NCBI GenBank assembly: GCA_964247055.1
Contig: OZ176059.1
Coordinates: 2,108,001-2,172,000 of the forward strand
DNA: 64,000 nucleotides
Source: Paragordius varius
Taxonomy: Eukaryota; Animalia; Nematomorpha
Direction: 5' to 3'
The notes beneath the pieces were generated by a model that was not told where the DNA came from, did no database searches, and was given only the letters and a program-made list of their open reading frames with translations. Position numbers and translations under genes: made by a program. Shown piece by piece: positions 18,427-63,914 of this stretch (position 1 is the first letter of the stretch; each line of letters begins with the position of its first letter).

Positions 18427-18743
18427 TCAAGTCATCATATTATTATCGCTATTGTGTGATTGTAATATGCAGGGGAGTGGCATAGGATTTTGAACAGCTG
18501 TTGTCTCCAGAATTTGTTTTTGTCCAACTTTCCAATCATCATGTAGGTGTGTCATCAATTTCTTAATCCCAATCAACCAATTATTAATCTATTCATATAT
18601 GTATATGCATATGTATAAAAATTAAATTATACAGACAAAACGTTAAATAAAGGGAATTTTTTCAAAAACCAAATAAAACCTAAATTTTCCTATATATAGG
18701 CTATTTAATTACAATGGTATAAAATATGGTATTTACTGTGTTA

Positions 18744-18778
<35 letters not shown>

Positions 18779-21700
18779 CTCTATTACACACTTTGTCATT
18801 TTTGACAAAGAGTTATGATTATAACTAAGATTTAAAAAGTATGGCTCTTTATGAATATGTATTTGTCTTAATATTTTTATGTTTTGTTCGTATTTCAATT
18901 TTTATTTCACTACAAATTGGACATAACACTTTTTAATAAGCTAAATAATTTATCAAAGTTTACAAACAAAAGATTTGTAGAAGTTCAAATAATATAAATG
19001 TCATACTTGGCTTTTATATGTACTAATAAAATTGAATAAATACGTAAAATTTATTTCAGAATTTAATGAAAAAAATTGGGTTAATATTTTACAGATAAGA
19101 GCAAACCTAAAGTATTAATAACCTTTAATATTGAATAAAATTTTTAGTCGCTACTTGTCTCTAAAACAAATCAACTTCTTTTAAAACATAAAATGAATAA
19201 CAAGGCATTCAAAAGTAATATATTAATTAGCACTTGTTAATATGCTTAATAATTAAATATGACAAAATTACTGTTACAATATAGGGGAAAAAATTGTTTA
19301 ATTTTAACTATTTATTGTTCGCAACCATACACTACTGTATATACAATTTGTTAGTTTTTCCGAAATTTTTTGTAAAAGGCAGTCGTTAAAATACTTTGAA
19401 ATATTAATCAATTTTATTTGTATTTTGGCACAGTGGGTATATTTTTATAGATTTTTTATAAGAGAGTTTTGCTTGACAAGTTTAAATCAATTGGATATAT
19501 ACTTTAAATTCATTATTATGAATGATATAAAATTATGGATAACAATGTAAAATTTAATTATATTTTGGTTAACAATGTTTTATAAGGTGAATAAAAAATG
19601 TTAAAAAAATTTGAAAAAAATAACATAATATCATGTTTTTTATAAAACTTAAACACTGAAATAATATAAATATTACAATAAAAGTTTTTAAGTTTCTTAC
19701 CCCTTGTTAAGTTAAGCTATTAATTTAAAAAAATTATGTTTAAATTAAAAAGTTTAAACCGGTTATTAATTGTAATAATCTGCTGATTAAAATGGTATTT
19801 AATATTTATTTCTCATATATGACATCTTCTTTGCATTCCAAAATCCTAAACTGTACACACTATCTTAACAAAAACAAACCTAACCCTAAGCCAAGGATAC
19901 TTATATATACCATTTGTACTTCAAGTTTATACTAGAACATTTCAAGTTGGTACTTAAACATTTCTAGCGTGTTTCTAACTTTTATCAAGAAATACTTATA
20001 TATACCATTTGCACTTCAAGTTATTCCTTAAATATTTCAAGTTATTCCTTGAATATTTCAAATATTTCTATTGTATTTCTAACTTTTATGTATGGACCAT
20101 GTATCATTTATCTATCCTTCCTATCATATTTAACCTATTATCTTTATTTGTTCTAAAGTTTAATAAAACAATATCCACTTTTTTTTCATTCAAAAACCGT
20201 ATATTTTTATTTATTATTTAAAGGTTTTTTTTATATTAATAAAAATTTAGCGCCAAAGTAATATAGTTTTCTGTGTAACTAAATACAATTTTTTGTTAAA
20301 AACATTAAGAAAATAATATTGTTAAATTGTGAAATTAATTCAAAACAAAAAATGGTTTTTGAATAAAAAATATTATTTTTATAGGCATAAATATTTCATA
20401 AATTATAAATATTAGGTTAAAAAAACAAAAAAATGGATGAAAAATTTTGTTATATCTAAACTTAAAAAGTTTACGGTCCAACTTGAAGTGTTTATTAAGG
20501 ATCTTAATGTGTTAGAGGGCCCAAATGTTTTAAAACACTCCTTGAGGTGCAGATGGTATACTTAAATATATGGGTTTTATACTTTTTATAGCTTTTCAAA
20601 AAATTTTTTATATCCAAAAAATATTAGTTTAACCTGTAACGGGTATTGCATAATAAGGTCAGAATGGTATTTAAAGGCTTCATCGAATTTATCATTGGAC
20701 AGGGCTAATAATGAAAAAAAAAATAAAATAATAAATTTTTGTAGAAATTAAGATTTGCAGATAAAACTGGTGTTACTCTATATTATCCAAATTCTATTAA
20801 AAATAATATAATAAAATTTTTCCATCTCAACAAAATTTTTTGTCACCAATAATATACTTTATTTTCGAAACTTATTAGAAAAATAAATTAATATACAAAT
20901 AATAAAAAGCTTCAATTTTCTTGGCTAAAAATATATTTTATTTTCAGTGGTTTCTAAAAATGAAATATAAAGAGTTTAAATGGGGTAATTGTTTTTTAAG
21001 ATTTTATTAAATGTACAAAGTGATATAATATAATATAATGCGGATAATAAAAACAGATATTATTTCCCAAAATATATTTACGTGGTTGAATTAAAAATAA
21101 AATATATAAATAAAATTAATGTTAATAAATAATACACATAATTTATGACATAAAAAACCTACCCTTGAACTTGAATTCTTACACATGTGTGAAATAAATT
21201 ATTAACATTAAATTAACCTTAAGGGTAAAATAATATATATATATATATATTGTGAAAAATACAGTAGAAATTACATGTATATTGTAAATTATATCAAAAC
21301 AAATTTAAATCAACTATCTGTTTTGTAGAAAGATTTCTAAATCCTATATAAATTTTTGAACAAGAAAAGGTTATTATAATGTTAGGACTATATTTTTCAC
21401 GATAAAGGTATATATATACCTTATTGTGTTCCATAGCTTTACACTTGCAAAATAGCACTATGAAAGTTGTTTTTAATAAAAATTTCAAGTTATTTTTAAC
21501 TGTAAAACATACAGCTATTATCAAAATATATTGTCAAGTTCAAAGGTTTTATAAGTCTTTAATGTTAAGTCACAAAAAAACGAAAAGTTTAATATGTGAT
21601 TTTTTTACAATTTTACATTTATGTATGAACCTTTTTTATATTGCGCTCAAAATGCCATAGTAATCAATATGAATATTTTCGAATCAGTCGTAATATTATA

Positions 21701-21945
21701 GATATATTTATAGTTGACATTTGAAATGGCTTTAGAGCTAAAAAAAACCACCCCAAAAAAGTAATAAGTTTTTTTTAAAAAAAGTATATAAGTATATTTA
21801 CCAGTAACAAGGTTATACATTTTGTGTTTGATATCGTTTGATAAAACTCCGTTACCCATATGAGGAGTACCGTTACACTCTTCTTGTGTTTTCGTCCATT
21901 CCAATTTACAAATTTGTAGTTTTTTATTAATTTCCTCCCTTTCAA

Positions 21946-21978
<33 letters not shown>

Positions 21979-22771
21979 TTTGAAGAGTAGATATTCCCAA
22001 TTAATTAAATCAACTGATATTAAAACAGAGGCGCAAGGGCTCTTAAAATTTTTTTTTTATGGCTTTAAGTTCTTATTTTAAGTATAATGCAAATGTGTCA
22101 AACAGATTTAAAGTTTTATGGATTATGCTGGTCATAATGCACTTTGCAATTTTAAGGTTTCTAGTTTTTAAGTTATAGTCGTTTTAATTGAGTATACCTC
22201 TTTATGGATATTTGGGAGTCATAAAAACAAAGTATTTGCAAAATAGTAATAATTTAGAAAATTAGAGATCGCATTAAATTTTAAACAAAATTCATATGGC
22301 GAATTTATGCGCAAATGTTGTATAATTAATGGAAGACCCACTATATATTTTAAATTTTTTTTTTAATTTTACTTTGGAAATTGAGGTATCTGGAAGTGAA
22401 AATAAGCGTGAATGTAAAGTTTCAAATATATAATCTGTATTGGTTTGAGTATCTGTGTATAACATGGTTTGATTTGATTCAGATAATATAATATGTTTGG
22501 CAGGATGAATGTGAGGTAATTCGGTTCGCTTAGCTAAGTATTAAATTATCACCAAATAGAAACTTGTATTTACTGACGATACTTCAGGATGTACTAATCT
22601 TTGGTTTAATTTATAACCAGTACGTGACGCTAAAAGATTTGGACTCCGACTAGCGTTACTAATGTAAGTAGACGGTTTCAAAAAGGGGGGGTCATTCCAA
22701 CCATTTGATAAGGTAGATGTTTCCTGACCTAAAGTTTAAACTTTTTCGAACAAACTTTGTTTTAACTCCAT
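18427..22771 (-). CDS. SRA1: Steroid receptor RNA activator protein (SRA1/SRAP) homologue, about 239 aa, 6 exons
   Basis: Exons 22771-22756, 22728-22564, 22533-22373, 21946-21802, 20704-20634, 18588-18427 (720 nt, all GT-AG, phases consistent). Contains the N-terminal GWNDPP...KLNQRLVHP motif and the C-terminal helical domain EEINKKLQICKLEW...LSNDIKHKMYNLVTALSNDKFDEAFKYHSDL...INNWLIGIKKLM, matching remembered SRA1 motifs (GWNDPP; SQWMVGVKRLI). Confidence 0.85.
19897..20086. repeat. ~95-bp tandem duplication in SRA1 intron 5
   Basis: atacttatatataccatttg(t/c)acttcaagtt starts at 19897 and again at 19992. Confidence 0.75.
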
Positions 22772-23232
22772 TATTCTTGAGCTGGTTGATGATGCCAAGG
22801 CTAGGCAATAATGCAGCGATTAAAGCGTCAAATGCAAAAAGGTAAAAAAAATGAAAAATTAAAACAATGACGTATGATTATACTCAGAGGGCTGAAACGT
22901 TTTTTCTGTTTTATTAAGCTTTTATAAATTAAAAATGTATAATATTGGTTAGGTAGAATATTTGTCACCCATTTAATTTTGATATAAACAATGAGAATAG
23001 GTATTTGTAATTTATAGTTATTAATGAGTATCTCTATAATTATCACAGGTCTTATTCAAATTTTAAAGTAATTTTTTATTCTTTTAAGGAACACCTCATA
23101 AAACATCAATGTGGAGAATGGGGTTGTGAGAATGAGTCTTTAAGGTAAAATGTTTAAAAAATAGTAGCCCAATTCAATTCAGTGCTATTTTTGAGTTATG
23201 TGCCGAAGAGATCCATTATTGACTATGTATTT

Positions 23233-25696
23233 CACTGGTACTCAAACCGCGGCCCGCGGGCCACATGCGGCCCTAAGATGGCTTTAAAATTGCCCTATGA
23301 TTATATTGATAGTTAAAATTTTTTTATTGATGAATTTTTAAAATCATAAATTTTCGCTTATTTTAATATTTATTTATTTTCTTTAGATTTTTTAATAATT
23401 TTTCTTTCCAATTTGATATGTAAAAATTTTCCTACATGAAAATGATTTCAAAATTTTGGCACTTGTTTTTGTTTCTGTATTCTGTTGTCTTTTTTATTTT
23501 CATATTTTAATGCATTCCTTTTTTATAGCAAGCCTTTCACACAAACTCGCATATACATCTTTTCATTGCTATCCTGCATCATTTTTTATAACTCATTCCC
23601 AAAAAATATTTTTGGAATCAACATCATTAAATTTTAACTTGTTTTTTATATCATAATTAAAATTATATTCCTATTTTTTGAAAAAATTTACATAATATAT
23701 AAACATAAATTCAAAGGATGACATCCAATGTCAAAACGTAAATTATCCGATGAAAATCGCTCCTTCAAAGAGTGGAAAGAAAAATTCTTTGTCGTTTTAA
23801 ATAAAAATGTTGCTACCTGCCTCATATGTAAGGACAACATAATTATAAAAAATACAATATTGAAAGACATTTTACAATCCATCATTCTCATAAATTACCA
23901 GCCAGAAAATCATGAGGAAAGAAACGAAAAATATAAAAAGATCAAGAAATTTTACCAGAGAGAAAAATCTATTATGTCCATTGCTTTCTCCCAGGAAAAA
24001 GCTGTAACATTAGCTTCGTATGAAATTTGCTACCTTTTTGGAAAAAAATATGAAACCGTTTTTTGATTCCCAACTAAAAAAAGAATGTCGAAATGGTTGC
24101 ACTTTTTTATTTGATAAATTCCATAATCAAAAAAAATCACGAGGCAAATTAAAAAACTTCAATTTTCTGATTCAACATGTGCATGACGCATTGAAGATAT
24201 GTCAGAAAATATTTTTAAAAATACATTATTGCCTTTGAAAAACTGCAAGTATTTTTTTAGTACAGCATTGATTCTAGCATTGATATTAAATGAAATTTAA
24301 CGACAACATAATCAACGAGGAATAATTATAATTTTTACCAGTGAATAATACCACAAAAGTAAGTGATTTTCTCGAAATATTCGATATTAATAGTATTTAT
24401 ATGAAAAAATTGGTTTCAATCTGCACAGATGGCTGTCCCTCTATGATTGAAATAAACAAAGGATTTATTCCTCTTTTGAAAAACAAATATAATTTGCAAA
24501 ATATTTTATCCTTTCACTGCTTTATTTATCAGCAAAACTTGGTTTCACGTGTAAAAGATGAATCACTCAATTCAGTAATTAAAACCGTTTTGGATATAGT
24601 TAACCACATCCGTGGCAGAGAATTCAACCGCCGTAAATTCAACAACATTCTGAAATATATCCACAGTGAGTTTGATGATATTTACACCTCTTTGATATGG
24701 CTAAGCTAAAGCAAATTATTTAATAGATTTTTTATTTTAAGATATGATCTATTATTTATAAAGGATAACAGAAAGTTTGACGAGGAAATTAATAGTGACA
24801 AATGGTGGGTTTCAATAGCCTACTGACATATAAACTTAAGATTTACAAGTCTTCAAGGAAGCAAAATAATAACCCAATTGTCTAATCAAATATTTACTTT
24901 AGAAGAATTAATAATATATAAACAAGATTTTATAAGTAAAAACTCCTATTTTTTCCAACAATTAAAACGATTCATGAAAAAAATATGTAATTACCTCGGA
25001 GATTAATTCAATGATAGATAACCATTTAACATTGTTATCTAATGGATGAAATTCAGATTTCAAAAATATATTAAAAATTGCTTAAAACTCGTTGAAAATT
25101 CATGGCATATGGATATACCCAATATTAATCAACTTGAGAATTTCGGTTTTGATCAGGCGCATATCATTGAAGAATTCGTAGATTTTAAAAATGATTTTAA
25201 TTTGGCGGCTATATTCAGGAGAATTGTAGAGAAAAAATATATGTAGAGTTTTAGCAAGATGTGCCAAATAAATATTATATAAAAAATGTGCTCTAGTTAT
25301 CATAACTGTTTTTACCACAACTTACACGTGTGAGAAGGCATATTCAAAAATGAAGTATGTCAAGAATACATACATAAATCGCTTAACCGATGATCATATG
25401 GACGACCTATTAAGATTGGCCTGTCATGAGGCAAAACCAAATTTGTCAAAAATTATTGGTTAATATAAAAAAAAAATGTTTGTTATCAAAATATTTTAAT
25501 TTTTTAAACTAAATGGTAAACGAGTTTTTAGCTAGATTTACATACGATCCGCAAAAAATTTATTGTGCTGATTTAGAGGATAAATATGTGCATATGTGTT
25601 AAATAGCTATGGAATATTTACCATTATAAGGTTCATGGCCCTCGAAAAAAAATATATTTTATTTGGCCCGTCAAATTTTTTTGGTGAGTACCACTG
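23233..25696 (+). mobile_element. Full-length but decayed hAT transposon (SPIN/GTF2IRD2-like transposase pseudogene)
   Basis: TIRs cactggtactc / gagtaccactg; perfect 8-bp TSD atgtattt (23225-23232, 25697-25704). Frameshifted fragments: MSKRKLSDENRSFKEW...CLIC (BED-like), LVSICTDGCPSM, SFHCFIYQQNL, and C-terminal FTTTYTCEKAYSKMKYVKNTYINRLTDDHMDDLLRLA. Confidence 0.92.
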
Positions 25697-30790: not shown

Positions 30791-30827
<37 letters not shown>

Positions 30828-33800
30828 GAACATTTGTTAATATTTTGTTTAATTTTACACACAAGACTGTATTATAGAATATAAACAGAAAAAAAATTTT
30901 TTGTTCCTTGCCAATTAAATAGACTTGTTCAGAAAATTTGAATAAGAAACATCAATTATACTAAAATTGTGTAAGCATGATTTAAAAAATTCAAACTTCC
31001 AAATTTTTTGCTGGTCTCACATAATATCTTGGAGGGCCGCGTGCTGGAGACCCCTTGAATTGGATTATAAATTAATTAATGAACGATAATAATAAATACA
31101 ATCCCATTAAATGGCCCTGCTTAATATGTAAAAAAGTCAAAACCAACGCAATCCAATGCCTCAAATGTAAAAAATGGGTCCACAAAAAATGCTCTCAGTT
31201 GAAATCGCTAAAATTACATCACGATTTTATATGCAGCAATTGCACCACGCCCAACCCAACTAAGCCTCCACAAAGTGTACGTAATGAAGAACCTTTTGAA
31301 ACAGTACAAAGTTTCACATATTTGGGTGATATTATAAGCGCTGGTGGGGACCTTGAACCAACCATCAATAACCGTATAAAAGCCTGGTCAAAATACTACC
31401 ATCCCAAAAGTATTATAAACAATAAATACATCTCATTCAAATCCAAATCGACTATGTACACCACCACCATACGACCCGTTCTAATTTACGCAACCGAAGC
31501 TATGGCTTTAACCAAAACAAATTCACTAAAGTTACAAGCGGAATGGATAATTCTAAAAACTATACTTTATGCTACAAACCCAAACCTCTATAATTACAAT
31601 AATAAATTTGATCCATATACTGTCCCACAAATGACTCCGCTTATCGACTGTTTGCGCACAAATCGTCTGAGATTTGCGGGACATGTTCACCGACGCCCAC
31701 ATGAAAGTTGGCTATACCGCACTGATGGTCAATTTTTCTACAAGTTTGCGAAATCGTAAAGGACGTCCATTACAAAGTTGGCTTTCTATTGTGGAAAACG
31801 ATCTGGCTATTTTAAACCTGAAAATTGATGATGCACAGGACCGATGCTCATGGCGTAAATCTATCCGAAGGGTTACCTTCTTGTTGGAAGAAAAAAACCC
31901 TTAAAGGTTGATATTCTTTGTTTTACTTTTATATGTTGAATATTTTAGGTTATGTCGCTTAAAATAGAAAATTGGCAAAAATATTGATCATTTTAATGTC
32001 TTTCGTTTTGGTATATATATATGAATAAAAACATATTTATACAATTTTTCCTCATTATCCACAAATATTCTACAATATATATTAATCCAAAATAACTAGA
32101 ATAATATTTTTGAATATATTACATATATATGTATATATTACCATTTTTAACGGACATTTTGGCAGAGTGTCCATTATTTGAAGATGAATTATTTTTATTT
32201 TGTTGTTGCTTATGGACGTGTTTTGTCTTGTGTTTCAGCATAAATGATCTTTTTAACCAATTCATATCCTAGGCATAAAAAATATGTAGTTTGAATTTAA
32301 AAACCTAAGGAGAAAATTTTATAATAAAGAAATAAAAGCAATACTAAAATATGCCAAGGAAACAGTTAACTTTAACGATTTTGGGTAAAATCTTAAAGTA
32401 CAAAACTTTTTGATCATTTTAATAATTAGGCAGGTAAAAAAATTATAATAACCATCCTAGCTCCAATAATTTTTAAATTTTTACAACTTTAAAGTTTAAG
32501 GGAAATTTGGCATGTGTCACAATTACCCTATATAAAACAATAAGTTTTTGTAAACTTTGGTATAACCTGAATATGTCGCCTTATTTTTATATAAATCTGG
32601 TTGTCTTTTGAAACGGAACTTGTCTTTAAATTTTTACATTATGTCCGTATAATAACAATTTTTACTGTATATAGGTTTGTCCAATTTTAGTTTTATCATA
32701 AGGTTTAAGTAAACTTAAAGTTCATTTGGCTTAAAACCTAAACCAATTTTTAATTCAAAATATATTTTCTTCGTAGACGTTTTATTTTTTTAAATTTCAA
32801 CAAAATGGATATTTAAGATTTATATAGAATTATCTATTTTAAAATGGATTAAAAGCATTCAAAAATTGTATTGGGGAATGAAAATTAATGCTTTCTTATT
32901 GCATTTTGTGTATGGAGTACTAAGGCTACATTTTGGTTTTTAAGATACGTTTTTATCATAGATTGTGACAGAGAAATATATTTGTGCGAAATAAATCGGG
33001 ATTAACCACAAGTTGAGTCACATTCATCTATTTTATGTATATATATATCATTTATAGTTCAAATTCACCCTTGAACCCTTGAACAATTCAATTTACCGTA
33101 AAATAAATTATGTTTTTTATAATGGTAATGAACGGATTGTTTATGTTTTGTAATAACAGTTGTTAAAATCCGTAATTTATAATTTCATTTAATATCTCTT
33201 TAATTATCCTTTATGTTTTTTATAGTTAAATATTACCCATATTTTTTTTATATTTTTAAAGAATGAAAATTTGTTAATATAATTCTGAAAAAATATAACC
33301 TATGCCAAGAATATTATTAATGATAAGTTTTATTAGCCCGAAAACAGATAATTATTTTTTAGGGTGAATTTGAATTGTAAATCGTATATATATAGCTTAA
33401 AAATAAATTATGTATTACAATACCATATAAAATTAAATAATAAGTTTATGATATTTTGCTAAATGTATCTTCAAATCATCTCAAGTTTTTATAAATCCTT
33501 TCATTACATAAATCTGAAATTCAATGAAAATTGTTCTATACAGTGTTCGTCAACTATGTGCATATGAATGCCCATTTGACAAGCTAAAATTAAAATTAAC
33601 GAAATATCCATACCCTTTAACGTCTAATATGATTTTTTGCAATTCCTTATATCAAAGCGATTTTTGAATAACATTAAATGCAGAAAGAAGAAGTTCAATA
33701 AAAGAATTATATTTATATCTTTTCATTGGTTTTGTACCCTGAGTGAGTTTGAATTTATAGATCGAAAATGTGTAAATGGTTTAGAGATGTTTTGTCCAGG

Positions 33801-36800
33801 TTTTTTTATATAAAACTAAAAAACTCCCAAATAACACATGTAAGTTGGGAACGTATGCTTTGTTATTATCGAAAAGGGCTTTCCTTACATAAAAACACAA
33901 TTAGATTCAATCGTGAAGATTATGGAATATTCCAGTCTTTCTTTATATTGAAACATGCAGTGTTCAACACGGTTAATAAATATTCATAATTTTAGGTAGG
34001 CTTGAAATTAAATCACATGGTTAAATAAATAGGGGTGTAACAAGTATCCTTTAATGATTGGAGGCATGCCAAGGCTCCCAAAGAATCCTACGAACTCGTG
34101 AAAAAAAGATCCTTAGAATGTGTAAATTAAACAAGGGATCAATGGAACGTTATTTATTGGTGACCGTAAAGTAGTTAAATAATGACATTATTTAGGTGTA
34201 CTATTATGGCTTGCGGGCTTGCAGAGTAGGTTGCCCCTAAGTAATTATGGCTGTTTTTTATGCAACAGCAGAGCTCTTGTCAATCGGATCAAATGTTTGT
34301 GTAAGGGAATCCTTATTGATATTAACAAAATATAAGTTCCCAGTTTACATATCACATTGGGAGTTTTTTCAGTTTTTATGAAAAAAAAAACTTGGAAAAA
34401 AATCTGATTCGTTTAATAAGCATTTTCATACCAAGTTTAAACTGAACCAACCTAAAGCAGAGGCAGGCCGGAGTGGTAACAAAACCCGTAATTAAATATA
34501 CATATATAGATAGTTCTTTTATTATGAACTTCTTTTGACTCAGAAAGTAAGAGGCAAACATTTGATGCTTTATGCAAAAATTTGATTCTGCGTTTTTAGA
34601 ATATGTTTATCATAATTATAAGATTACACAAATATTGCCTCGATATAAAGGATAGGCAAAAAAGTTCATTGGAAGTTTTTAGGATATGGGTATTATTTCG
34701 TGATTGTAATCTATATATTTATAAAAATGGAAAATGCTGGCTTTGTTATCTGTTTCCGGAAAACCGGTAGACCAATTGGAATCCAAATATCGAAAAAATC
34801 TAATCATTAATGAATGCCCTTACAATAGCTTCGCCCTTATTTTGAATTACAGGTCGGGGCCACCCCGTGTAAACGGTTTTTTTTTTGAAAACAGAAGTCC
34901 ACAAAATCGTGTCTTTGAGACAATTTTCCAGAAAACGTGTTGGCCCATTCAATTTCAAATATAATTTTTGTTTGGTTATTTTCGATTGCGCCGAACATAG
35001 TCGGCTCGCTTTTTTAATTTAGCCCCTCTTTTTACCTGCTCCCCCGTAAAACGCCATTTTTTTTAAAAAACAAATTCCTCAAAAATAATTTTTTGAATCT
35101 ATTTTTCGTCCAAGTAAACAATATGTATAAATGCACCGTTTTAAAATTCCTATGAACCCCCCCCCTTCCCCCCAGAATTCCGAAGAACTTCCTCGGGTTG
35201 CGTAGCAGGACGAGATTTACGCTAGTTGTAATATATACTATTTGCCATGAAAATGTACATTTCCATTGAAATGTATTGGATTACAATCAAATGGGTGAAC
35301 GGATGATGCCCCAAGACTTGTGATAAGATTTGAAAATTATAGATACAACCAAAAAATATTATAAGTATGTTATCCGATTTCATATCGAATTATAATACAG
35401 AATTCATATATATATATATATAAATATATGCTATTTAACAATAATTAATTAACAATATATACTTTTACTCATATTGTAAATTTATTTAGAATAAATATGT
35501 CCTGTCACAATCTATGTAAAAAATAAACACCAAAATGTAGTACCCATACATGATATATCACTCGTAAAAAGTATAAATCAACAAGCTATTTTGAAAATAT
35601 TATAGCATTTAAGCCATTTTAAAACTGTAGCAAAATTGAGAGAGTTACGCATTCATTATAAAATTTATTAAAAATTAAGCTGAAATGCGTATCTTATAAA
35701 AAAATATAAATTTTAATTTTCGACATCGAAAAAAATTGAAATATATATATATATATATTGAAATTTTTTAAAACTGACTTTTTAACTAATACATAACAAT
35801 TCTGGCTGGTATCATTAAATACATTTCAATTATTAAAGTATGGACAAAAAAAAAAAGTTTAACAAAACTTGATAAGCTTAAAAAAGGGAGGATAGTATAT
35901 CCTTATTATAAACAGATTATCATCACACAAGTCATTAATAGTTTTTTTAGAGAAATGGTGTTTGTTATACTAAAATGCACATTATGAATCGCTGAGTGCC
36001 AATTTTAATATATAACATATTAATAATTCCATTTTTGATGTCGTTAAAAAAATTTTATAAAAAAAACTTTTAAAATTTTCGTTTTAATACCAATCCTATG
36101 CAGTTACTACTAGATCCAGCGCTTATATAGTTAGCTGGAAAACAACGCGTCTCCAAAAAGATACAATGTTAATAATGGTCTACATATTAGAACGATATAA
36201 CCAATCAAAATAACTATAACAAATACTAACACATATCCTGAATTATTCGTAGTTAAACTAGATATTAAATCCAAATCCAAATTAAAAAACAAAAATACCT
36301 TGATATGGACTTTATCGAAGTCACTTTTCGATTTTTGTCGGGTAGGAACCGGTACTGAGGGTGGAGCTTGCACCTTAGGGCAAAATTCTACCCTTTGATC
36401 ATTCATACGTGCATTCTGTGCTGCGTAAATTTGTTCAAACAGCTGACTAGTTTCATCCATGAACGTTTTAGCTTCCTTGGAAACAACAATGTTTGGCATA
36501 TCAGGTGACTTATGTGCTTTTTGTGCCTTTTTTGGTAAAATATCCTTATTATCTTGAAAAGTATTAGGATTATTTGTATGTACTAAATCATATGTAGATG
36601 ATATAGGTTGTCCCTTATGAGGGTATACAAATATTGGTTCTGTCCCCCTAACATGGCCGGTTTCAATATGGTTGACTGTCGCATTTTCTATGGCATTTCT
36701 ACGTTCACACGTTTTATCAACACAAGTCTCGTCTTTAAAGGGTGCGATACTTGAGTTTTCATGACTAAATTTTGCCGTATTTGCTTTAGTAGCGGTAAAA

Positions 36801-49735: not shown

Positions 49736-49766
<31 letters not shown>

Positions 49767-49867: not shown

Positions 49868-52800
49868 TTAGGGTTGATGGATCATATTAATGGGAATGTG
49901 AGTTGTTATACGAATTTGTGAGGAAGGAACCACCCCTTCCATTGTTTTATGCAATCTCCCATCAAACAATAGGGTAGATAATCCAAATAATATGAAAACT
50001 ATAGCACCAACTAATGTAACTAAAAAATAATGAGATTTAAAAATTTTAAATTATATTTTCAATTTACAAATATATACAGTCATGTATCCTTTATTTTATC
50101 AAAAAATTATTTTTTTGTTAAATGGGTATAAATATTTGGTAAAGAATGAAAAAAACAAGAGCTCTATGGTATTAACAATATCATATTCATCAAAAAGTAT
50201 AAGAATTACTTTAGAGCTCTTGTTTTTTCCATTCTTTACCGAATATTTATACCGATTTAACGAAAAAAAAATAATTTTTTGATAAAATAAAGGATACATG
50301 ACTGTATATATGTTAGGGTAGTTTGAAAATATAATATAATATTTGGTAAGAAATAATTTTACACTACATCTTGAAACAAATGTATCTTTTTTACCTTATT
50401 GTGACCTCAAACAAACTTTTAATTGGGCGACAAAATATAATGCAAAATTTTTCCTTTTCTAAACTTTAATGCGAAAAGTTAAAGCTAATCGCTCGTAGGT
50501 TTACATTTCTCCACGTTTAAAAATTATTTATATTGTGCAAAATACAAAAATTTACCATTAAAATCAAATACAGGTTTTGCCTTAAAAATTAAAATATTCT
50601 TTTATAATTGCACATAGGAATCAACACATATTACTTATTAAATATAAAGTTAAAGTGTTTATATACATTTCGTTATAAAGTAACATATATTCACACAATG
50701 GAAAAAAGATGGATAAAAATTGTATAATTTCAACCATTTGCAGTTTTATCGTCATCATATATAATGTTCAGGGGATAAAATTAACCCCAAAAACGTCTCT
50801 TTTACTATAAAACGCTAAAAATTAGAGCATAATACTAGGAATTACATAATGTACATAAAAAGCACATTCTTTATTTAACAAATTACTACTTACCAAATCG
50901 AACAGATAGCTTGGTTGATATATAGCGTCCAGCTACAACAGCTAACATAGTACAAAGTGAATGACCCAATATTGCACCGATGGTTACACCTTGTACATTC
51001 TATAATTAACAAGATTTTATATATAATTAAAAAATAATAAAGTGGTGGAATATATCTAAATTATTAACTAAGCAACTTTATTTAAAGTATCGAAGTTTAA
51101 AATCTGAAAGGTAACATTTTTAAATATAAATTAAATTTTTTATTTTTCAATACCATTTTTAAAATGTTAGATAAGGAGTAGTTAAGGGCAAATTGTATTG
51201 CAAAACTGCGTTATAAACATCCATTATCATATTGGTTTTATGGATAAAAATAAACAAAAATATGGCTGATTTTATTAAAAATTCATCCTTTAACATTCAT
51301 CGGCAGTTCTCTGTATTATACACCTAAATTAATTTAAAAATTAGGCTTTATCATTACAAATGTCATTGTATTTTATATTGACCAAATTTTTCCAATCAAT
51401 AAATATTCATTTACGATATGTTAATTTAAGGCTAAAAATATAAAATTAAAACCCGAAACGTAAATTTGAATTAAAAACAACTATAATACTAAATCTTGTA
51501 TAAATCAACCCATTAATATTCAGACGATTATGTTAAATTAAAACTACTAAAAATACTAAACTAAAACTCGAAACATATACAGTCATGTATCCTTTATTTT
51601 ATCAAAATTTATTTTTTTCGTTAAATGGGTATAATTATTTGGTAAAGAATGGAAAAAACAAGAGCTCTATGGTATTAACAATATCATATTCATCAAAAAG
51701 TATAAGAATTACTTTAGAGCTCTTGTTTTTTCCATTCTTTACCGAATATTTATACCCATTTAACGAAAAAATAAATTTTATATAAAACAAAGGATACGTG
51801 ACTATATGTCAGATATGAAAACTTCAAATAGTTAAACAACCTCTTTAGCCGCTAAAACTATGGTAGCTATTTGGCTTCGGTCCCCCCACTCAGCTAAAAA
51901 GGTCATAGTGAATGCCTGTAAGCCAACCGTGCAAATCAGCTGAGCCAGGGCCGAATTTTTGGGTACAAAATATTTATGAATAAGGTGTCTAACTGCATCA
52001 TGCGTAGGAGCTTTGTATCGATGACCGCCTTTTTTATGGTGGTCAGTTTTAGCGATCACGTGACTAGAGGCGGACCGCCCTTCCTCCAGGTCAAGGATAG
52101 CAACGGTACTTGGAGATGATATGCAAACCCCATTTAATGATGTGTCTGCGGTCCCGGCACCCGTATGTATAGCTAATTCGGTGTACTATTTATAAGGATG
52201 ATAGTTTAAGTCAATAATATATTGTTTGTTGCTTATTAATTCAAATGTGGTTTACAGTATATGAATAAGTATACATTGCTAGTTTCAAATTTAATATTGA
52301 CAATAATTGTATACAATAATATATTCAGTTTGAAAAATAATTCCTTTTTAAGAATTTGAAACTAGTCATTATTTGATTTGCTATTTCAATTTTATACCTA
52401 TAGCAAATAAAAATTTTATAATTAACATTCAGTATGAATGTTATTGGCAATAATATTAAAAAGTGAAAAAAATAACTTTACGCCAATGTAATATTGCCCT
52501 TTGCTTATTATACCATTTACAATTCAATTCACCCTTCGACAATTCAAATTCATTCTCAAACAGTTCAAACTCACCTTTAAACAATTCAAATATACCCTTG
52601 AACAACTCAAAGTAACCCTAAAAATAATTATGTCTTTTTGCTAATATAACTTACACTATACAACAAATTTTCTGCCGTTAGTGTTCTGCCACTCAAGTTT
52701 ATATATTTACTATCATTTCAGATATCTATTCGTATCAAATTTTTTTCATTCATTCTTTCATCCAAATCATATTTATATATCATATGATGCACCACCTAAA

Positions 52801-55168
52801 TTGTTTGAAAAAAATTGTGTCATAATAAAATCTCAATTAATAAATTTCTTGCTGATGACCATTGGTTTTACATTAGCCAAAAAAAAATCGAATTAATTAA
52901 TTAAAGAGCAGTTGGTACTCAAACCGCGTCCCTATAAAAGTCCTATTTTATAGCTCAATGTGTCAAACTGCTAATGATTTTTTTCATATCTAATATAGTT
53001 CACGGCCTATTGAGATATAATAAATATTTTTGTAAATCCTCTATAAATTTTTTTTGTGAGTATTATTATTATTCTTGTTTTGGACTTAATCAAATTTAAT
53101 TGATTAATAAACAAATTACCACACTAAATGGTGTTATTTTAGGTTTTTTATGTAAAATTATTTTTTTAGATTTCTTTTAAATTTATTTAGTAGTATATTA
53201 AATACCTATTGCTATTTATATCCTTACCAAAAATTATAACCTAAGTATTGCACAGACACATATAAATAAATATGGTAAATGCTTCAGTCAGTCAGACAGG
53301 TATTTTTAATTAAAAATATAACCCAACTAAGTAAAAATATGTAAAAATACCACTAACTAAAAATAGAATCGATAAAAAATAGCAAAAATTTATAAGCTAC
53401 AAATTAATGAAATCTTGGGTAAAAGTAAATAAATAAATATATAAAGTTTACTAACTTCATGTTCCTTTTTAAGGATGTCATTTTGTAATTCCTGATACTC
53501 TTCCTGACCCTCATTCGGAGACATATAATAACCTTGGAAAAGATAAAAAAAAGTTATAACTATTAAAAATAATACCGTTATAACCGGTTTAGGAAATTAG
53601 TGATTACAATGAATTGCCCCCCAAAAAATATCCAAGATTAGGCTTATTTTAGTTTTACCTAAGTATACAAAATTTCCAAAAATTGTTTCAAAAAAAAGGT
53701 TGAGAGTATGGAGAGTTAGTTAATGTTAGGGCAAAATAATACCGATCTGAGTGCTTAAGGGTATTCAAATGTAATTACACTCGAAAATGTGTATTATTGT
53801 ATCTAAAAGTTAAAAGCGAAAACTTAATAATACTAATCTATCAAATGGCTTCCATCTATTGTATCAATACTAACAAACAACTAATATAAAATTAATATAT
53901 TAAAATTGTTAATCTCAAATTTTTGACATACAAAAAATTTAATTACATTCTTTATAGTTCGATTAATATTATTACTTTTAATATTTGATAAAATTATATT
54001 TATAAAACTTGACATATAATTCATATATTGAGCTAGCCAGTGACAGCCACGTCCATAGCATTTATAACTATTATCAAACCTACACCTACTTGTTATAGAG
54101 TTATAGCTATACAGTGTAAAGTCATCAAAAATTTATAAATGTTGAAATATTATAAACGAAAGGAGGGCTGGCCCAATCATCTATGCCCACAATTTTTGAC
54201 CTTTTAAAACATATGTGTATAAATGTTATTTGAAAATTTAAAATATACCGAAAATTTTACTTTTTATAGTTGACCTTATAAAACCGGACAATCCACTATT
54301 CAAGAAAACCTTTTATAACTTGCTTACTTCCTTTGAAAGGAGAAAATAGCGTATAAAAGGGAATATAAAAGTAAATTTTACTATATAAAAAGAAGATAGA
54401 AATGGTATCATCCATTAGTTGAATGATTTTATTTTAATACTATCTTACTTAACGCTTAATAAGCAAAAACACGGCAACTAATTTTTTAAAACTAAACAAT
54501 CCTAACTTAAGCTAATTAAATATCGTGTGTGTGTTAAAAATACAAAAATTATATGTGATAACATAATTCAGTAAATGTAAAAATTTATTTTCTAATAGAT
54601 TAACCTAGCCAACCAATTATAATATTAGTTCTAGGAATTTTTTATAAAAAAATTTATATAAAAATTAATAAAATTAGAAAAATATAAATATGATATAAAA
54701 AAACCTTCCTTAAGCATTTTTATGCCAAAGGCAAAAAATAGCAAAGCCGACATGTACACAACTATGGATCGTGGAATGTTTGTGACTAGCATACCCATAC
54801 AGGCTAGAAAAATTAATTGTCAAAAAATAAATATATAAATAAGTAGATTATTTATCAAATATAATAAAGTAAAACCTAATAATTTATATATAAATATATA
54901 TACCAGCTAAGACAGTCATTATAAAAAGGGCAGTCATAGCGCCTCCAAATACAATTAAGCGTGAATGCCGCATAGCCATTATGGCAGCTATAAAAAATGT
55001 TTTATCACCAATTTCGGACACGATAGTTATGGAGAGGGAACTTAGAAAGGCGTGATACATATTATTTGAAGTGGTTAAAGATGATTCAATATGATCATTT
55101 AAGTTGTGGATTGTTGAAATCGTAGATATATGATATGGTAAATGATTGGTTAGGTTTTTATAATCCAT
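49868..55168 (-). CDS. TMEM165: TMEM165/GDT1-family (UPF0016) Golgi Ca2+/Mn2+ transporter, about 347 aa, 6 exons
   Basis: Exons 55168-54904, 54803-54705, 53532-53456, 52185-51841, 50999-50894, 50019-49868 (1044 nt, phases consistent). Both E-x-G-D-(K/R)-(T/S) motifs present (SEIGDKTFFIAAIMAMRH; LAEWGDRSQIATIVLAA), plus MSPNEGQEE and GAILGHSLCTMLAVVAGR. Start codon inferred as the first in-frame ATG. Confidence 0.93.
50077..50304. mobile_element. 228-bp foldback MITE (TA TSD, CAGT termini, Tc1/mariner-like) in TMEM165 intron 5
   Basis: TA|cagtcatgtatcc...ggatacatgactg|TA with roughly 90-bp inverted arms; near-identical copies at 51580-51804 and 63915-64000. Confidence 0.9.
51580..51804. mobile_element. 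Foldback MITE, second copy, in TMEM165 intron 4
   Basis: Same sequence as 50077-50304 with few substitutions. Confidence 0.9.
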
Positions 55169-55268
55169 TGTGGGTTCGGAAAAAAATATTTTCCGAATAA
55201 GTTCTGGCTTCACGTTATTAAAAGATAGTTTAAATGAATGAATAGATAAGCAATATGTAAGGGTTGAT
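55169..55268. promoter_or_regulatory. Putative bidirectional promoter / overlapping 5' UTRs
   Basis: Only 100 bp separate the divergent predicted ATGs of TMEM165 (55168) and the PAP2 phosphatase (55269). Confidence 0.6.
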
Positions 55269-56148
55269 ATGGGTAAACCATCTGCTTTTACAGGTTACAC
55301 AGTTTAAATTTTAATGGTTTTAGAATATGGATCACTTAAATTTTATAAAATTGTGGAACTCTCTGGTAACGGTGCGATATGTTTGGCTATTTTACTTATG
55401 ATTTTGATATCTACTTCCTATCCCAACTTTCAAAATGTGATTATGAATCTCATTTTATGTATATAATTTACATATAAAATATTTAGATGTAATTTTAGAT
55501 TTGATTTTTGTATCATTGCTCAAAGTTTGTGTGCGTCGCAAAAGGCCATATTATCCATCCAAAGTTAAAGATGGTAATGATGGAGATCATATTGTGCCAA
55601 ACGATATATCCGCGATCTGTTCTAATTATCCTCATACTGAATCTCAACCTGATAACCTTAATGAATCTAAGCCCTATCATACCAAAATGATTTTAACTGT
55701 TGAATCTATCGATAGATACTCTTTTCCATCCGGGCATGTTTCACGTGCAACTTTGGTTATAACGCACATTTACTGGCATTGGCAAACGATATATGCAGAT
55801 TTTTTGCAACCGCACATTGTTTATGATTTTATACCGGTCAAACTTTTTCGGCTAATATGTCCTTCCCAGCAGAAAACTTTTGTGGTATCCAAAAACATTT
55901 CTAGCAAGACATATGATTGTTTAAATATGCACTACCTTGTTTTTTCTTACACCATATTTATGCTCGCAACTTGGTTGTACCTTATATGTCAATCGAGAAT
56001 ACGTCTTTTGAGACATCACATGAGCGATATTGTGTTTAGTTTTTTTCTTGGTCCATTAGAATTTTTCATGTTTGAACGATTTTGTAAAATTTCACTGAGC
56101 CATACAATGAATTTTATATTACCGTTACATTTACATTTTAATTATTGA
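55269..56148 (+). CDS. PAP2-superfamily lipid phosphate phosphatase, PLPP6/PLPP7-like, about 273 aa
   Basis: Exons 55269-55293, 55324-55458, 55487-56148. PAP2 motifs C1 K-VCV-RRKRP, C2 SFPSGH and C3 SRIRLLRHHMSD; upstream IVELSGNGAICL...NLILYVILDLIFVSLLK resembles PLPP6/7. Exon 1 is tentative because an alternative ATG exists at 55314. Confidence 0.85.
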
Positions 56149-57587: not shown

Positions 57588-57802
57588 AAATCAATAAGAG
57601 TGTTGAAGTTGGCTACCGGTTGCAGATTGGATATATAAGTATATTCTAGTTAGCATCTCAGACAATAAAAAAAACCCAAATTTGATGAGTGTTTACGCGT
57701 TTTGTCCTTATTGTGGACTCATCAGTCACACAAATGATGATGCTAAGTAATATATACCCAATCTGTAACTGGTAGGCAACTATTCTTACCTCATATTGAT
57801 TT
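57588..57802. repeat. Palindromic element with a central hammerhead-ribozyme-like motif (possible Penelope-like pLTR relic)
   Basis: Imperfect inverted arms aagagtgttgaagttggctaccggttgcagattggatata / tatacccaatctgtaactggtaggcaactattctt; centre on the minus strand reads CTGATGA-gtcc-acaataa-ggac-AAAA-cgcgTA. Confidence 0.55.
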
Positions 57803-58396: not shown

Positions 58397-60998
58397 CTAG
58401 CGTAAATCTCGGGCTGCTACGCAGCCCCAAGAAGACTTCTTGGGGGAGGGCAATATTTTTGCCTTTATACGCGTATGATCTCATAATTTTGGCGAAACCC
58501 TAACAACATATTGTTGAGCGGGTTAAGGGTATAAAGGCCTCAAGTGCACCAAATTTGAACAATGTTAACAAAAAAATATACTTCAGCAATGATCTCAGTA
58601 TAAAAAACATAAGAAATTATTTGGTGCGTGCAAAAAAAGCTTTATTTTTGACATTAGATATATAAATAATAGAAAAGACATGTATAATTTTGGCCTTAGA
58701 GAGTAAAGATAATATATATATATATATTAATGCATAAACTGTGTGAGTTAATCACTGAGCATAATTTATCCTTATGGAGTATGTATATATGGCTTACACA
58801 CAATTGGATACGAGCCTGCGAAGCCGCTATTAGAAATTAGGGCTCAACAAATTGTGATCCATATATGTAGATTATTTCGAAACAATATTTAATAGTTACG
58901 ATCTCATAGGATTTTCAAAACGGTGCTTCATTGAATTTTCAAAACTGTGCATTCATACTAATTTATTGTTAACTGGTGTGAAGGCCCCAAATTTTTACCT
59001 TTTATGGGTATTGTTTAAAACCCTTATTGAACTGGTATGGCTACTTATGTTTTGAAAATTAGCTCCAAAACCACGCATTTTTGTATGGCATCTCAGTTTA
59101 GACCTATAGGGCAAAGCGCTGAGTTAAATTTTTTGTCTTTATAGGGCAAATTTGGAATCATCTTTGATACCATCGTCTCTTGAATTTTGAAAAAACTACG
59201 TCAATACTTCGTTATATGATGGCGTATTTTTAGGACATAAAGGCCCGAAATTAACGGTTTATAAAAAATGCCAGACCTTAATTTTTACCTAGTTACGGGT
59301 AATTTGTTTTAATGAATGGCCTCATAAATTTTTTGTAAATTAGCTCCAAACACAATTTATATATAGTGGCAGATTTTGGCGGGTCTCCTTACCCAGAGTC
59401 AGGTTTAAAAATTTGTGCAAAATTCTTGCCTTTACATGGGGTATATCTGGAATTATCATGGATCCCATATGTTCCTATCAATTCTTAGAAATAATGCTTC
59501 AAAACTAATAAACTGTTTTATGGCGGATTTTACAGGACCTTTACTTAGCATATCATAAAAATAACCCTCATGCTAAAATATTTGTTTTCAAGGGGTAATA
59601 AATATACTAGGCCCTTATTGAACTAACAGAGTCTGATATTCAAATAATTTGGCTCAAAAGGATGTTGTATCGATATGGCGACACAGTTTTAACACCTCGA
59701 TTCAAATTGGGGTATCTAAATACCCCAGACTAAATTTAAATTAAAATATTTAAAAAACTACTGAAGGAAACGGTCCCAATTTAAATTTATGCTTCTATCC
59801 TGATAAATATTATATAAATATGAAAAAATATCTTGATAAAAATTTGTTTTGAAAAAAAAGTTTGATCTCAAACTACTTCGACGCCATTTTTATTTTACAA
59901 AAATTTTGCAAAATATCGTCTTAATTTAATTTTAAGGGAAAAACTAAAGCTTATTTTTTATATAAATTATATCTAACATTTATAGAAATAGAAAAAGCGG
60001 TTTATTTTGTATTATTTTTTACTTTTACAATTAGACACATGTCACGTGACTAAATTTTTAACTTTCAGTTTTAGCTCTAAATAAGTAATATCAAGTATTT
60101 TTGAATAAAATTTTTAATATATTTCGGTTTATTAATGTTATACAAGTGCAAAATTTTGCCATGGTTTTAAAGTATTTGAATTTAAACAGGCCTGGGGTAT
60201 CTAACTACCCCAATTTGAATCGAAGGACTAAAATGAGTGTGTTGTATCCAAGTGTTAATCGGGGACTACCTAACATAGGGTGAAACAAAAAATTTCTCAG
60301 TTAAAATTTTTGCCTTAATTCGGGTAATACCTGAAATCATGATTAATTTCCATATACTCCCGTGGGATTTTCAAAAAATTGCCTCAAAACCAAAAAATCA
60401 AATGATGGCGCATTTTCAAGGTAAGGGTCTAATTAAGGCTTAATAAATTTTCTATTTAGTCCTAAAGGCACGCTATTTCGAAATGACGGGGTCGTTTTAA
60501 GCGGGTATTTGCTTGCCTGGCAGCCAATATAAAAAACGCACGACTATATTTTTTGCCTTTTAACAGGGAATACCTGGAATTCTTTTGAAATGTTAAGGTC
60601 TCATACCTCAGGCGAAAAACACATTAAAATTTTGTAGCCTTTTTTGAAAAAAAACTGGCTTTTTACGGGGGGATGAGGGAGGGGGGGGGGTAAAAAGAGC
60701 GTCTAAATTAAAAAAGCGAGCCGACTATGTTTAGCGCTATCAAAAAAAGAAAATATTATATTATAAATCAAATGGTCCAACACGTTCTCCGGAAAATTGT
60801 CTAAAAGACACGATTTTTGTGCACTTCTGTTTTCAAAATAAAAGCACTTTTCACACGGGGTGGGTCTGAACTGGGGGCCTAATTCAAAAAAAGGGCGAAG
60901 CTATTGTCGGGGCATTAATTAATGATTATGGAGAATGGGTCTACCTGTTTTGCGGTATCAGTCAAAGCCAGCATCTACCATTTTTATAAATATATAGA
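58397..60998 (-). mobile_element. Long Helitron of the same family with internal tandem units
   Basis: 5' TC end at 60998; minus-strand 3' hairpin gggctgc-gta-gcagccc then gagatttacgCTAG|T at 58397; 3' region shared with 8900-9208; interrupted by the TTAA MITE at 59693-60254. Confidence 0.8.
59693..60254. mobile_element. TTAA-flanked MITE inserted in a Helitron
   Basis: TTAA|cacctcgattc...gtatccaagtg|TTAA; the Helitron repeat unit resumes on both sides. Confidence 0.85.
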
Positions 60999-61107
60999 AG
61001 ATTTAAATATATCATATGGTTTATAAGTGAATAGAAATCTTTTTTAAATAACAGATGGTATAATTTAACCCTTGTTTTGATTTTTATTTTTTTATAATTT
61101 TTAAAAT

Positions 61108-63075
61108 ATGGGGGATATTGTCAAAGGCCACCAAAATACATCCGATGATTGTTTGATAATGGATAGTACGGATATAAAAAGTTGTTCTAGTAAAACTTTG
61201 CATGCATATTCCACCTTTATTTTATCTCAATTCGATCGTTTACGAAAGCGCGAGGAGCTTTGTGATGTCACTTTAATAGTTGGAGGGGAGAGCTTCAAGG
61301 CCCATAAGTATACTTATTATCATATACGATTATCATTTTAATTGTTTGTATCGGACAGTAATATATTGTATAACACTTTTTACCATTTATTTTGAATCCA
61401 TATTTTACTGTTTAGAGCGATTTTAAGCGCTGCATCTCCCTATTTTTATGCCATGTTTACCAGTCATATGGATGAGAGTCGAAAATCGCAAATTGAAATC
61501 CATGATATCTCAGCTCAAGCTATGAATATAATATTAGGTTATTTTTTATATTTTTACACACAAGATGGTAAATTTAGAGATTTTATTTTTATTACACAAA
61601 TTTTTAATAAGATTCACAATTTTTTTGTTGGCTATTAAGTTTAGAAATAAACAATGCTAGCTTAAAGTTTGTATAAATTATATTTTTCCGAAAAATGCAT
61701 ACTTTTAATGTTATTTTTCCTACCTTAAAATTTTATGTTTATGGATATAAAGTTTAAATAGAATCAAATTAAACTTATATTATATATTAATTTTTTATAC
61801 TTTTTATAACTATATCGCTTTATCACACCTTTATTGGTTAATTCAATTTAAAAATATAATCAAATGTTCATTTTAATACGGCTAAAATAACAAAAGTTTT
61901 GAATAATCACAACAATAAACTATTTAAATATTGAGTGGGTTTTTAATTATTAAGTGTACGAAAATATTTTTTAAAAAATAAATATATTATAAAACAAAAT
62001 TGAAAAAAAACAGTTCAAATCTACAAAATCTATAAAAAATAATTTTGACCACTTTTTATACATTGTTTGTTAAGAATTATATTTTATAAAATTAAAACTT
62101 ATAATTAACATCTGCCATTTGTTAACACTTTATGACCTTTTTAGGGGAGTTTTATAACCTTGGGCCCATTTAAAATTTCGATAACTTAAAAAAATTTTTA
62201 GCATTAAGGCACAAATATAAACATATGATTTCTTTAGCCTTGTAAGTGAATGATATAAAAAAAGTTTTTTTACATTTAAAATAAGAATAAAAAATTGTCA
62301 TCTTAAACTTTTTTGTAGCCATTTTTTCCTTTGAGTTTTTTTTAAATTGTGAATACAACACGCAAATAACTGTATATTATGGTTAATAAATATCTAAAAC
62401 TTTCCAGCAATTAGTTGATTAATTTTATTGTAACTTTTTTCATTTATATTTAAATTAAACTAACTAATTACAGTATAAAATTGGAATTATACGGACAAAA
62501 CGTAAAAATATAAAGACAAATTTTTTTTTCTAAGAGACAACCATACTTTTTAAATCTTAATTTTTTAAAATTTAAATAATTGTTAAAATTTGCAATTATG
62601 GAATAGAAATGAATATATGTAACACAATCAATCATATATTTTCTACTTGTATATAACATTTAATATATGGAAAAAATTTTTTTGGATTTAAAAAAGTATG
62701 TATGGTTGATTGGCTTGGTTATATTTTATAAAAAAAATATTTGTGTCTTTATATTTTTACGTTTTATGTCCTTTCGTATGATTCAATTTAATTTTTAATT
62801 TTTACTGTTAATGTTGCTAATAAATTAAAAATAATCTTTTTTTAGAATTCATTTATACGTACAATGAAATTGTGGTGAATGAATGTAATGTACAAACCCT
62901 ATTACCAGCTGCTTGCTTATTTCAACTTGACCAGGTGCAAAAAGTGTGCGAACAATTTTTGTTGAATCAGTTGGATTCAGGTAATTGTTTGGGTATTCGG
63001 GCTTTTGCAGATCTCCATTCTTGTCATGATTTGTATGACATAGCTGATAGATTTGTCCATAATACGTTTGAGGAG
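61108..63075 (+). CDS. BTB-BACK kelch-like protein (KLHL20/diablo-like), 5' part; continues beyond the window
   Basis: Exons 61108-61307, 61416-61537, 62846-63075. Spliced product [39 protein letters not shown]...EFIYT...[14 protein letters not shown]...[18 protein letters not shown] is a canonical BTB plus the start of BACK. Confidence 0.92.
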
Positions 63076-63914
63076 GTTTACCTACATTATACTAACTAAT
63101 CTTTTTTACACAATACAGTACAGTAGTTAAAATTGAAATTGATTGAAATCATATATATATATGGACAAAAATGTAAAAATTATATATATAGATGGCGTAT
63201 ACATAAATATAAAAGTTTATATGTACGTAAAAGACAACTTACCATACTTTTTAAACCTTGATTTTTAGAAAAAATAACTAATGATTGTTGATTTCAACCG
63301 CAAAATATGAGATATAGGGATGTAAATTGGTAACATATAATCAATTACATATTTAATGATTGTAAATAAATGAATTTTATAGAATAAATCAAGGTTTAAA
63401 AAAAGTATGATTTTCTTTTGAAAAAAATTATTTTGTCTTTAGATTTTTACATTTTGTCCGTATAATAACACTCTTTACCATAAAAAGACGCTATTTTACC
63501 ACTTTTTATGTAATTTGGATATTTAGATACCGTTTTATATAATACGTTTATTTTGCGGTTTGACTGTATTGTCCTATTAAGAATAGTTATTTTATCTTAT
63601 AATATTCTAAAGATATAAAATACAAAAAAATTAATTTTAACAGACAAAACATATAATCTAAAAGACAAGTATATATATATATATATTTATAAGACAACCA
63701 AATCCTTATGTTAACCTTAATATTTCCTACACAAAACTATATTTACAATCTTTAACTATATAAATGAGTATATTAATATAAATCACTCGCTGTTTTTGCA
63801 TTTGAGCTAATTTAATCAAATAATCAAGGTTTTATCAAATATATTTGTCTTTTTGAAAATATATTTTTAATTTTTTACGTTTGTCCTTTAGAGTTTACTT
63901 ATTTATATAATATA

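Follow-up and report, generated by a model that had tools for sequence, protein, structure and literature searches.

A relaxed 5' splice-site consensus in sampled genes of the hairworm Paragordius varius

An initial annotation of a 64,000-nucleotide (nt) stretch of the genome of the hairworm Paragordius varius (Nematomorpha; GenBank assembly GCA_964247055.1, contig OZ176059.1, here C10, positions 2108001 to 2172000; "the window" below) described its 5' splice sites (donors) as degenerate. This observation is confirmed for predicted junctions both in the window and elsewhere in the genome. In a sample of nine genes with 58 donors, the second permitted base at intron position +3 is T rather than G, T is favored at +4, and G at +5 is found in 21%. 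The most probable explanation is that these are ordinary U2-type spliceosomal introns, whose donor consensus has relaxed in this lineage to approximately R/GT(A/T) (a single slash marks the exon-intron boundary). The mechanism originally proposed, retuning of the spliceosome toward the exon side through altered small nuclear RNAs (snRNAs) or splicing factors, is partly supported. No publication on splice sites in hairworms turned up in the literature library searched.

Donor and acceptor consensus

Of the donors, nine belong to three genes of the window and the other 49 to six genes in other parts of the genome; PRP8 supplied 34, and the remaining 24 come from HSP70 paralogs, U1-C, SNRNP27K, and the window genes. 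PRP8 was selected for replication because it is nearly invariant among eukaryotes. Eight full-length PRP8 proteins, retrieved with one exon from a representative library, served as references. Between adjacent ungapped matches, every frame-open boundary pair within 45 nt of the alignment ends was enumerated, and the joined piece was translated and scored against the reference protein. With these eight references, 34 junctions were accepted, of which two are weak. Identity to the reference, mostly 70 to 93% in the better-conserved exons, fixes the junctions to the nucleotide; no rival GT-AG pair scores within 4 points of an accepted junction, and at 24 of the 34 no boundary, whatever its dinucleotides, outscores the GT-AG solution. 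For BiP, HSC70, and the mitochondrial-type HSP70 (mtHSP70), uninterrupted exons of one another were used as references, and the false short "introns" produced by insertions and deletions among these paralogs were removed by a score filter. The U1-C and SNRNP27K genes also supplied junctions, and a GT-AG solution was available for all 58. A reading-frame scan for micro-introns, run over 293 kb without homology, was excluded from the statistics except for one flagged donor in a PAP2 phosphatase gene; in PRP8, only about one-quarter to one-third of the candidates that it marked as needed matched the homology-based calls, and many were ambiguous. Among the HSP70 genes, the 165-nt intron 2 of cytosolic HSC70 (C6:5387355-5389419) shares one 659-amino-acid open frame with its flanking exons, and its retention would add 55 residues with no truncation.

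At +3, the 58 donors have A in 60%, T in 38%, G in 2%, and C in none, compared with 50% A, 50% T, and no G in the initial annotation. G or C is present at this position in 1 of 58 donors versus 22% expected from intron composition (P = 1.9e-5). At +4, T (34 donors, 59%) is more frequent than A (20 donors, 34%). Intron lengths are bimodal, with 23 micro-introns of 23 to 35 nt and a longer class of 68 to 3009 nt, and the two classes differ in their donors. T at +4 reaches 17 of 23 in micro-introns (74%), above intron composition (P = 0.002), and T at +3 is likewise more common there (12/23, against 8/33 in the longer class; P = 0.048). The near loss of G at +5 also held up in the larger sample (21%, previously estimated at 14%), against a frequency of G inside introns of 11.4%. 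In micro-introns, +5G is at background level (2/23), and in longer introns it is approximately twice background (9/33, 27%; P = 0.01); T at +6 occurs in 53% of all donors and in 67% of those of longer introns.

On the exon side, A is found at -2 in 71% of donors, and the base at -1 is G in 60% (68% in the first estimate) or A in 33% (19/58), giving a purine in 54 of 58. Acceptors are TAG in 48 of 56 cases (86%, the same proportion as reported initially), AAG in six, and CAG in two. None of the 58 donors is of the U12 type (/RTATCCTT). The donor motif as a whole carries 5.8 bits of information, with 1.8 bits outside GT, of which approximately 1.2 bits lie at -2 and -1 and approximately 0.6 bits are spread over +3 to +8; the portion that usually pairs with U1 and U6 (+3 to +6) likewise accounts for approximately 0.6 bits. 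The mean match to the U1 consensus CAG/GTRAGT is 5.3 of 9 positions versus 6.7 in control species, and extended complementarity was not found. The only donor with G at +3, CAG/GTGCGT, belongs to the 3-kb intron of SNRNP27K (C8:387792-390800), which is the longest intron in the set and has its most canonical donor, with a nearly full match to U1.

Two PRP8 loci served as controls for the identical code, one from an animal assembly (GCA_029852925.1; 42% GC) and one from a eukaryote of metagenomic origin (47% GC). The donors returned were of the GTAAGT or GTGAGT type, with G at +5 in 21 of 29, A or G at +3 in all 29 (G in 13 and T in none), and G at -1 in 25. Since the controls yield GTRAG-type donors, the pipeline does not itself create degenerate ones. 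P. varius differs from the control species in +5G (P = 4.6e-6), +3T (P = 3.8e-5), +3G (P = 7e-7), and -1A (19/58 versus 2/29; P = 0.008). P. varius and GCA_029852925.1 have at least 11 intron positions of PRP8 in common; at 11 such shared positions, +5G is present in seven donors of the control animal and in two of P. varius.

Metazoan donors have been assigned to two classes, AG//GUNNN (associated with U5 loop 1) and NN//GURAG (associated with the U6 ACAGA box), representing 45.1% and 53.6% of human donors, respectively (PMC11732430). P. varius shares with this model its GT-AG U2-type introns, canonical U1, U5, and U6, a purine-rich exon end, and a minority of longer introns with //GURAG donors. 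However, only four of the 58 donors are //GURAG and 20 (34%) are AG//, leaving 34 (59%) in neither class, whereas the two classes cover approximately 99% of human donors. The model's see-saw compensation between exon and intron sides was not seen either. G at -1 is equally frequent in GTA (60%) and GTT (59%) donors and is less frequent overall than in the controls, and AG// donors are rarer than in humans, so there is no exon-side compensation. The initial proposal of exon-side recognition is therefore borne out in that most of the information outside GT is at -2 and -1, but not in any strengthening of these positions; the exon side merely keeps more of the little donor information that remains.

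Spliceosomal RNAs and associated proteins

The snRNA search covered U1, U5, and U6 and gave Rfam matches of 124, 91, and 114 bits, respectively. Each of the four intact U1 genes retains the usual bases 3 to 8 (ACUUAC), which read donor positions +1 to +6, and U5 loop 1 (GCCUUUUAC) and the U6 ACAGAGA box are canonical. This argues against the altered U1 and U6 recognition sequences that had been suggested as the cause of the relaxed donors. Inspection of the snRNA genes nevertheless revealed one departure, in that the intact U1 genes belong to two families, ACUUACCUGG (L001 and L003) and ACUUACUUGG (L002 and L004), the second carrying U instead of C at position 9 (C9U). The families differ throughout their length, but 16 of 40 predicted pairs are preserved by two-sided changes, and neither the Sm site nor the loops that bind protein have been lost, so both look functional from their sequences. 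Position 9 of U1 pairs with the exon base at -1, and U at this position pairs with A or wobbles with G. The putative C9U variant thus fits the purine-only pattern at -1, as a correlation.

One gene of each family is found head to head on contig C6, 1.4 kb apart, and the U1 cluster on this contig contains at least 15 U1-like matches. In four further copies (L005 to L008; C6:580738-633363 and C6:3729224-3733775), the first 20 to 25 nt, including the recognition sequence, are replaced by AT-rich DNA, and these are probably pseudogenes. Variant U1 genes are known in animals, with several U1 families per genome and clusters that include truncated pseudogene copies. P. varius is similar in having more than one U1 family and clustered genes with truncated copies but differs in that its families diverge at recognition position 9 while both keep their structure through compensatory changes.

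The factors named in the initial annotation were all found. METTL16, the U6 N6-methyladenosine (m6A) methyltransferase, is encoded by a 530-amino-acid intronless open reading frame with S-adenosylmethionine-binding and NPPF motifs; its best match is to Gordionus sp. (39% identity; 215 bits versus 142 for the next match), and other matches are named U6 m6A methyltransferase. Both exons of SNRNP27K match the Pfam SNRNP27 profile, and the C terminus (RQYMNRKGGFNKPLDFIA) keeps the key Met in RQYMNRKGGF. U1-C is present with its conserved zinc finger, as are two LUC7 genes. The proposed change in U6 m6A or SNRNP27K-type factors therefore finds no counterpart in these genes, METTL16 with NPPF and SNRNP27K with its Met both being retained.

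Window genes, junctions, and repeats

Window exons were searched singly against Pfam. The window has 23 to 31% GC and belongs to a 110.56-Mb assembly of 44 contigs, and an Rfam search of it found no family matches. The typical donors of the initial annotation were found in their stated positions; the donors of the three window genes are GTATAT, GTTTTT, GTTAGT, GTTGTT, GTAAGT, GTATAC, GTTATT, and GTTTAC, the last of which ends at 63081, where the region described in that annotation also ends (Table 1). Continuity of the Pfam profile across the junction is exact between exons 4 and 5 of the TMEM165/GDT1-family gene and between exons B and C of the KLHL-like gene and is within one position between TMEM165 exons 1 and 2 and KLHL-like exons A and B. 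The other junctions were placed by reading frame and by a presumed similarity to human TMEM165. At the weakly called exon 3 of this gene, GTAAAC, 4 nt downstream of GTTAGT, is an alternative donor; at exon 4, the sole other in-frame GT before the stop is likewise a GTT. A word search with the PAP2 open reading frame gave no matches. Donors of the genes at 18.4 to 30.4 kb, 36.1 to 44.0 kb, and 1.2 kb were left out of the check because these genes offered no usable homology.

Table 1. Coordinates of genes and donors (window positions unless a contig is given; exon letters in lowercase)
Feature	Position	Strand	Details
PRP8	C5:4191470-4201710		~40 introns in 10 kb, ~1 per 58 codons; ~half are 23-35 nt
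U1 genes L001-L004	C6:604678-606419; C3:864188-864352; C6:3718553-3718717		
TMEM165/GDT1-family gene	49868..55213	-	Six exons; five introns of 100, 1172, ~1300, 841, and 874 nt; Pfam GDT1 on exons 1, 2, 4, and 5
TMEM165 exon 1 donor	54898..54906	-	ctg/GTATAT (at 54903); 100-nt intron; GDT1 position 47 at exon 1 end, exon 2 from ~49-50
TMEM165 exon 2 donor	54699..54707	-	aag/GTTTTT (at 54704); 1172-nt intron; reading frame, ...LKEG joined to YYMSPNEGQEE
TMEM165 exon 3 donor	53450..53458	-	gaa/GTTAGT (at 53455); weak call, acceptor not fixed, loop region downstream unconserved
TMEM165 exon 4 donor	51835..51843	-	gag/GTTGTT (at 51840); 841-nt intron; GDT1 position 27 at exon end, 28 at first residue of exon 5
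TMEM165 exon 5 donor	50888..50896	-	ttg/GTAAGT (at 50893); 874-nt intron; frame joins ...KLSVRF to VTLVGAIVF; among the few +5G donors
PAP2 phosphatase gene	55.3-56.1 kb	+	Pfam PAP2 on downstream exon
PAP2 micro-intron	55456..55486	+	tat/GTATAT (at 55459); 28 nt; reading-frame scan without homology; 40-nt alternative acceptor, same donor
KLHL-like (BTB-BACK) gene	from 61.1 kb	+	BTB profile on exons A, B, and C
KLHL-like exon A donor	61305..61313	+	taa/GTATAC (at 61308); 108-nt intron; BTB 1-28 on exon A, 27-71 on exon B
KLHL-like exon B donor	61535..61543	+	tag/GTTATT (at 61538); 1308-nt intron; BTB position 68 at exon end, 69 at exon C start
KLHL-like exon C donor	63073..63081	+	gag/GTTTAC (at 63076); acceptor not located; only GT between conserved ...HNTFEE and in-frame stop
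TPR/GoLoco gene	36.1-44.0 kb	-	Weak
Poorly conserved genes	18.4-30.4 kb and 1.2-1.6 kb		

Introns 4 and 5 of the TMEM165 gene contain near-identical repeat copies (51585-51808 and 50082-50299); in the copy at 50082-50299 both strands have the same open frame of 66 amino acids, as might be expected of a palindromic element resembling a miniature inverted-repeat transposable element. Another repeat of approximately 200 nt is dispersed in at least five copies on both strands (5706-5942, 6597-6842, 16031-16249, 34734-34964, and 60735-60986), which share similar open reading frame fragments (GWARTGGL.. and FLKT.W..). Two transposon remnants (23728-25460 and 31079-31904) consist of hAT-like transposase fragments and of the tail of a non-long-terminal-repeat retrotransposon, the latter with a zinc finger of the PHD type (E = 1.6e-4 in Pfam).

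Explanations and significance

If the donor consensus of ordinary U2-type introns has relaxed in this lineage, as we consider probable, U1 would bind through a short duplex of approximately 4 to 7 pairs, and the purine-rich exon end, with A at -2 and a purine at -1, would be held by U5 loop 1. The remaining specificity would come from context, namely, the sharp drop from approximately 37% GC in exons to approximately 20% in introns (values for PRP8), and, in micro-introns, from the fixed short distance to the TAG acceptor (i.e., intron definition). From known spliceosome structures, G44 and A43 in the ACAGAGA box of U6 are candidate pairing partners for U at +3 and +4, and the C9U family of U1 may tolerate A at exon position -1. 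We think it unlikely that a combined version of these ideas is correct, in which donor choice no longer relies on contact with U1 and U6 at +5 and +6, U1 small nuclear ribonucleoproteins (snRNPs) with C9 and with U9 are divided between donors by the last exon base, and micro-introns are defined by a length ruler and the AT jump together with pairing of U at +3 and +4 to the ACAGAGA box of U6.

A contribution of context is supported by the resolved part of PRP8, which contains 427 GT sites. A motif matrix derived from the remaining genes separated true donors among these sites with an area under the curve (AUC) of 0.88; the change in AT content from the 20 nt upstream to the 20 nt downstream (the AT jump) did so with an AUC of 0.86 alone and 0.94 together with the motif. 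Several considerations weigh against a relaxed consensus compensated by context. The AT-jump result is correlative and comes from a single gene, with introns that are by definition rich in AT. In longer introns, the frequencies of +5G (27%) and +6T (67%) indicate that canonical contacts still matter. All junctions derive from protein comparison or reading-frame logic with GT-AG assumed, and the sample, with 34 donors from PRP8 alone among nine genes, is not genome-wide. The control genomes, at 42 to 47% GC, are not AT-matched animals, and the roles given to U6 pairing and to the U1 variant are proposals of what may occur.

The mechanism put forward in the initial annotation, a spliceosome retuned toward exon-side recognition through changed U1 or U6 snRNAs or through changed or lost U6 m6A or SNRNP27K-type factors, is in our judgment unlikely. 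It gains from the second, structurally intact U1 family, with its change at the base that pairs with exon position -1, from the greater frequency of A at -1 than in the controls, and from the preference for T over A at +4. In Saccharomycotina, replacement of A by U as the preferred +4 base goes with loss of METTL16 or SNRNP27K, or with change at Met141 of the latter (Parker et al. 2023, PMC10581693). P. varius is like these yeasts in having more U than A at +4 (most markedly in micro-introns) and in having no compensating change in U6 or in bases 3 to 8 of U1. It differs in that METTL16 and SNRNP27K are retained with their key motifs, the genome is intron-rich (approximately 40 introns in PRP8) rather than intron-poor, and +3 and +5 are also relaxed, whereas the consensus in yeasts is more invariant. 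Retuning is further opposed by the unchanged recognition sequences of U1, U5, and U6; by the presence of U1-C and two LUC7 genes; and by the equal frequency of G at -1 in GTT and GTA donors, together with the low proportion of AG// sites.

Plain composition drift, by which pressure from G/C to A/T would erode +5G and +3G as in any very AT-rich genome, appears improbable. Intron interiors of the donor set have only 22% GC, as drift would predict, but GTAAGT is retained in other eukaryotes of very high AT content, Dictyostelium among them. Moreover, the depletion of G and C at +3 and the excess of T at +4 in micro-introns, relative to intron composition, indicate that selection still acts, but for other bases. 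A parallel in favor of drift is provided by oligohymenophorean ciliates (Paramecium and Tetrahymena), which are AT-rich, have introns of approximately 25 nt, and conserve only GT...AG (PMC5014332). P. varius resembles them in its AT-rich genome, its class of introns of approximately 25 nt, and its minimal terminal consensus. However, it is an animal, and its micro-introns occur at intron positions found also in PRP8 of another animal, alongside kilobase introns in the same genes. Beyond GT and AG, its introns are also constrained to A or T at +3, a purine at -1, A at -2, and TAG in 86% of acceptors, with a micro-intron class confined to 23 to 35 nt.

It is very improbable that the pattern is an artefact of mis-modeled donors with genuine GTRAG sites nearby or of short inserts that are not introns. 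The junctions are predictions from protein comparison and reading frame, alignments are weak at two junctions in PRP8, three in mtHSP70, and one in TMEM165, and the PAP2 donor comes from the frame scan alone. Against this, enumeration of all GT-AG pairs within 45 nt left the accepted PRP8 junctions without a close alternative, and the high identity of PRP8 to its references pins them. The micro-introns contain stop codons or shift the frame, many are at positions shared with PRP8 of another animal, and the same pipeline gives canonical donors in the controls.

The GC content of the window (26%) is similar to that of Gordionus (26.9%), and the P. varius assembly (110 Mb) is smaller than those of published hairworms (200 to 300 Mb). 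Such genomes may be mis-annotated by gene predictors and BUSCO-type tools that expect GTRAG donors and introns longer than approximately 40 nt, which could lower completeness scores (71.6% for Gordionus) and lead to overestimates of how many genes hairworms have lost. More than half of the sampled donors fall outside both metazoan classes, while the machinery that was checked looks canonical, and P. varius therefore offers a natural experiment on whether donors can be defined by a contrast in composition, by intron length, or by a variant form of U1. If the combined reading with two U1 snRNPs, U6 pairing, a length ruler, and the AT jump were true, P. varius would have a spliceosome for which donors beyond the two known metazoan classes are routine.

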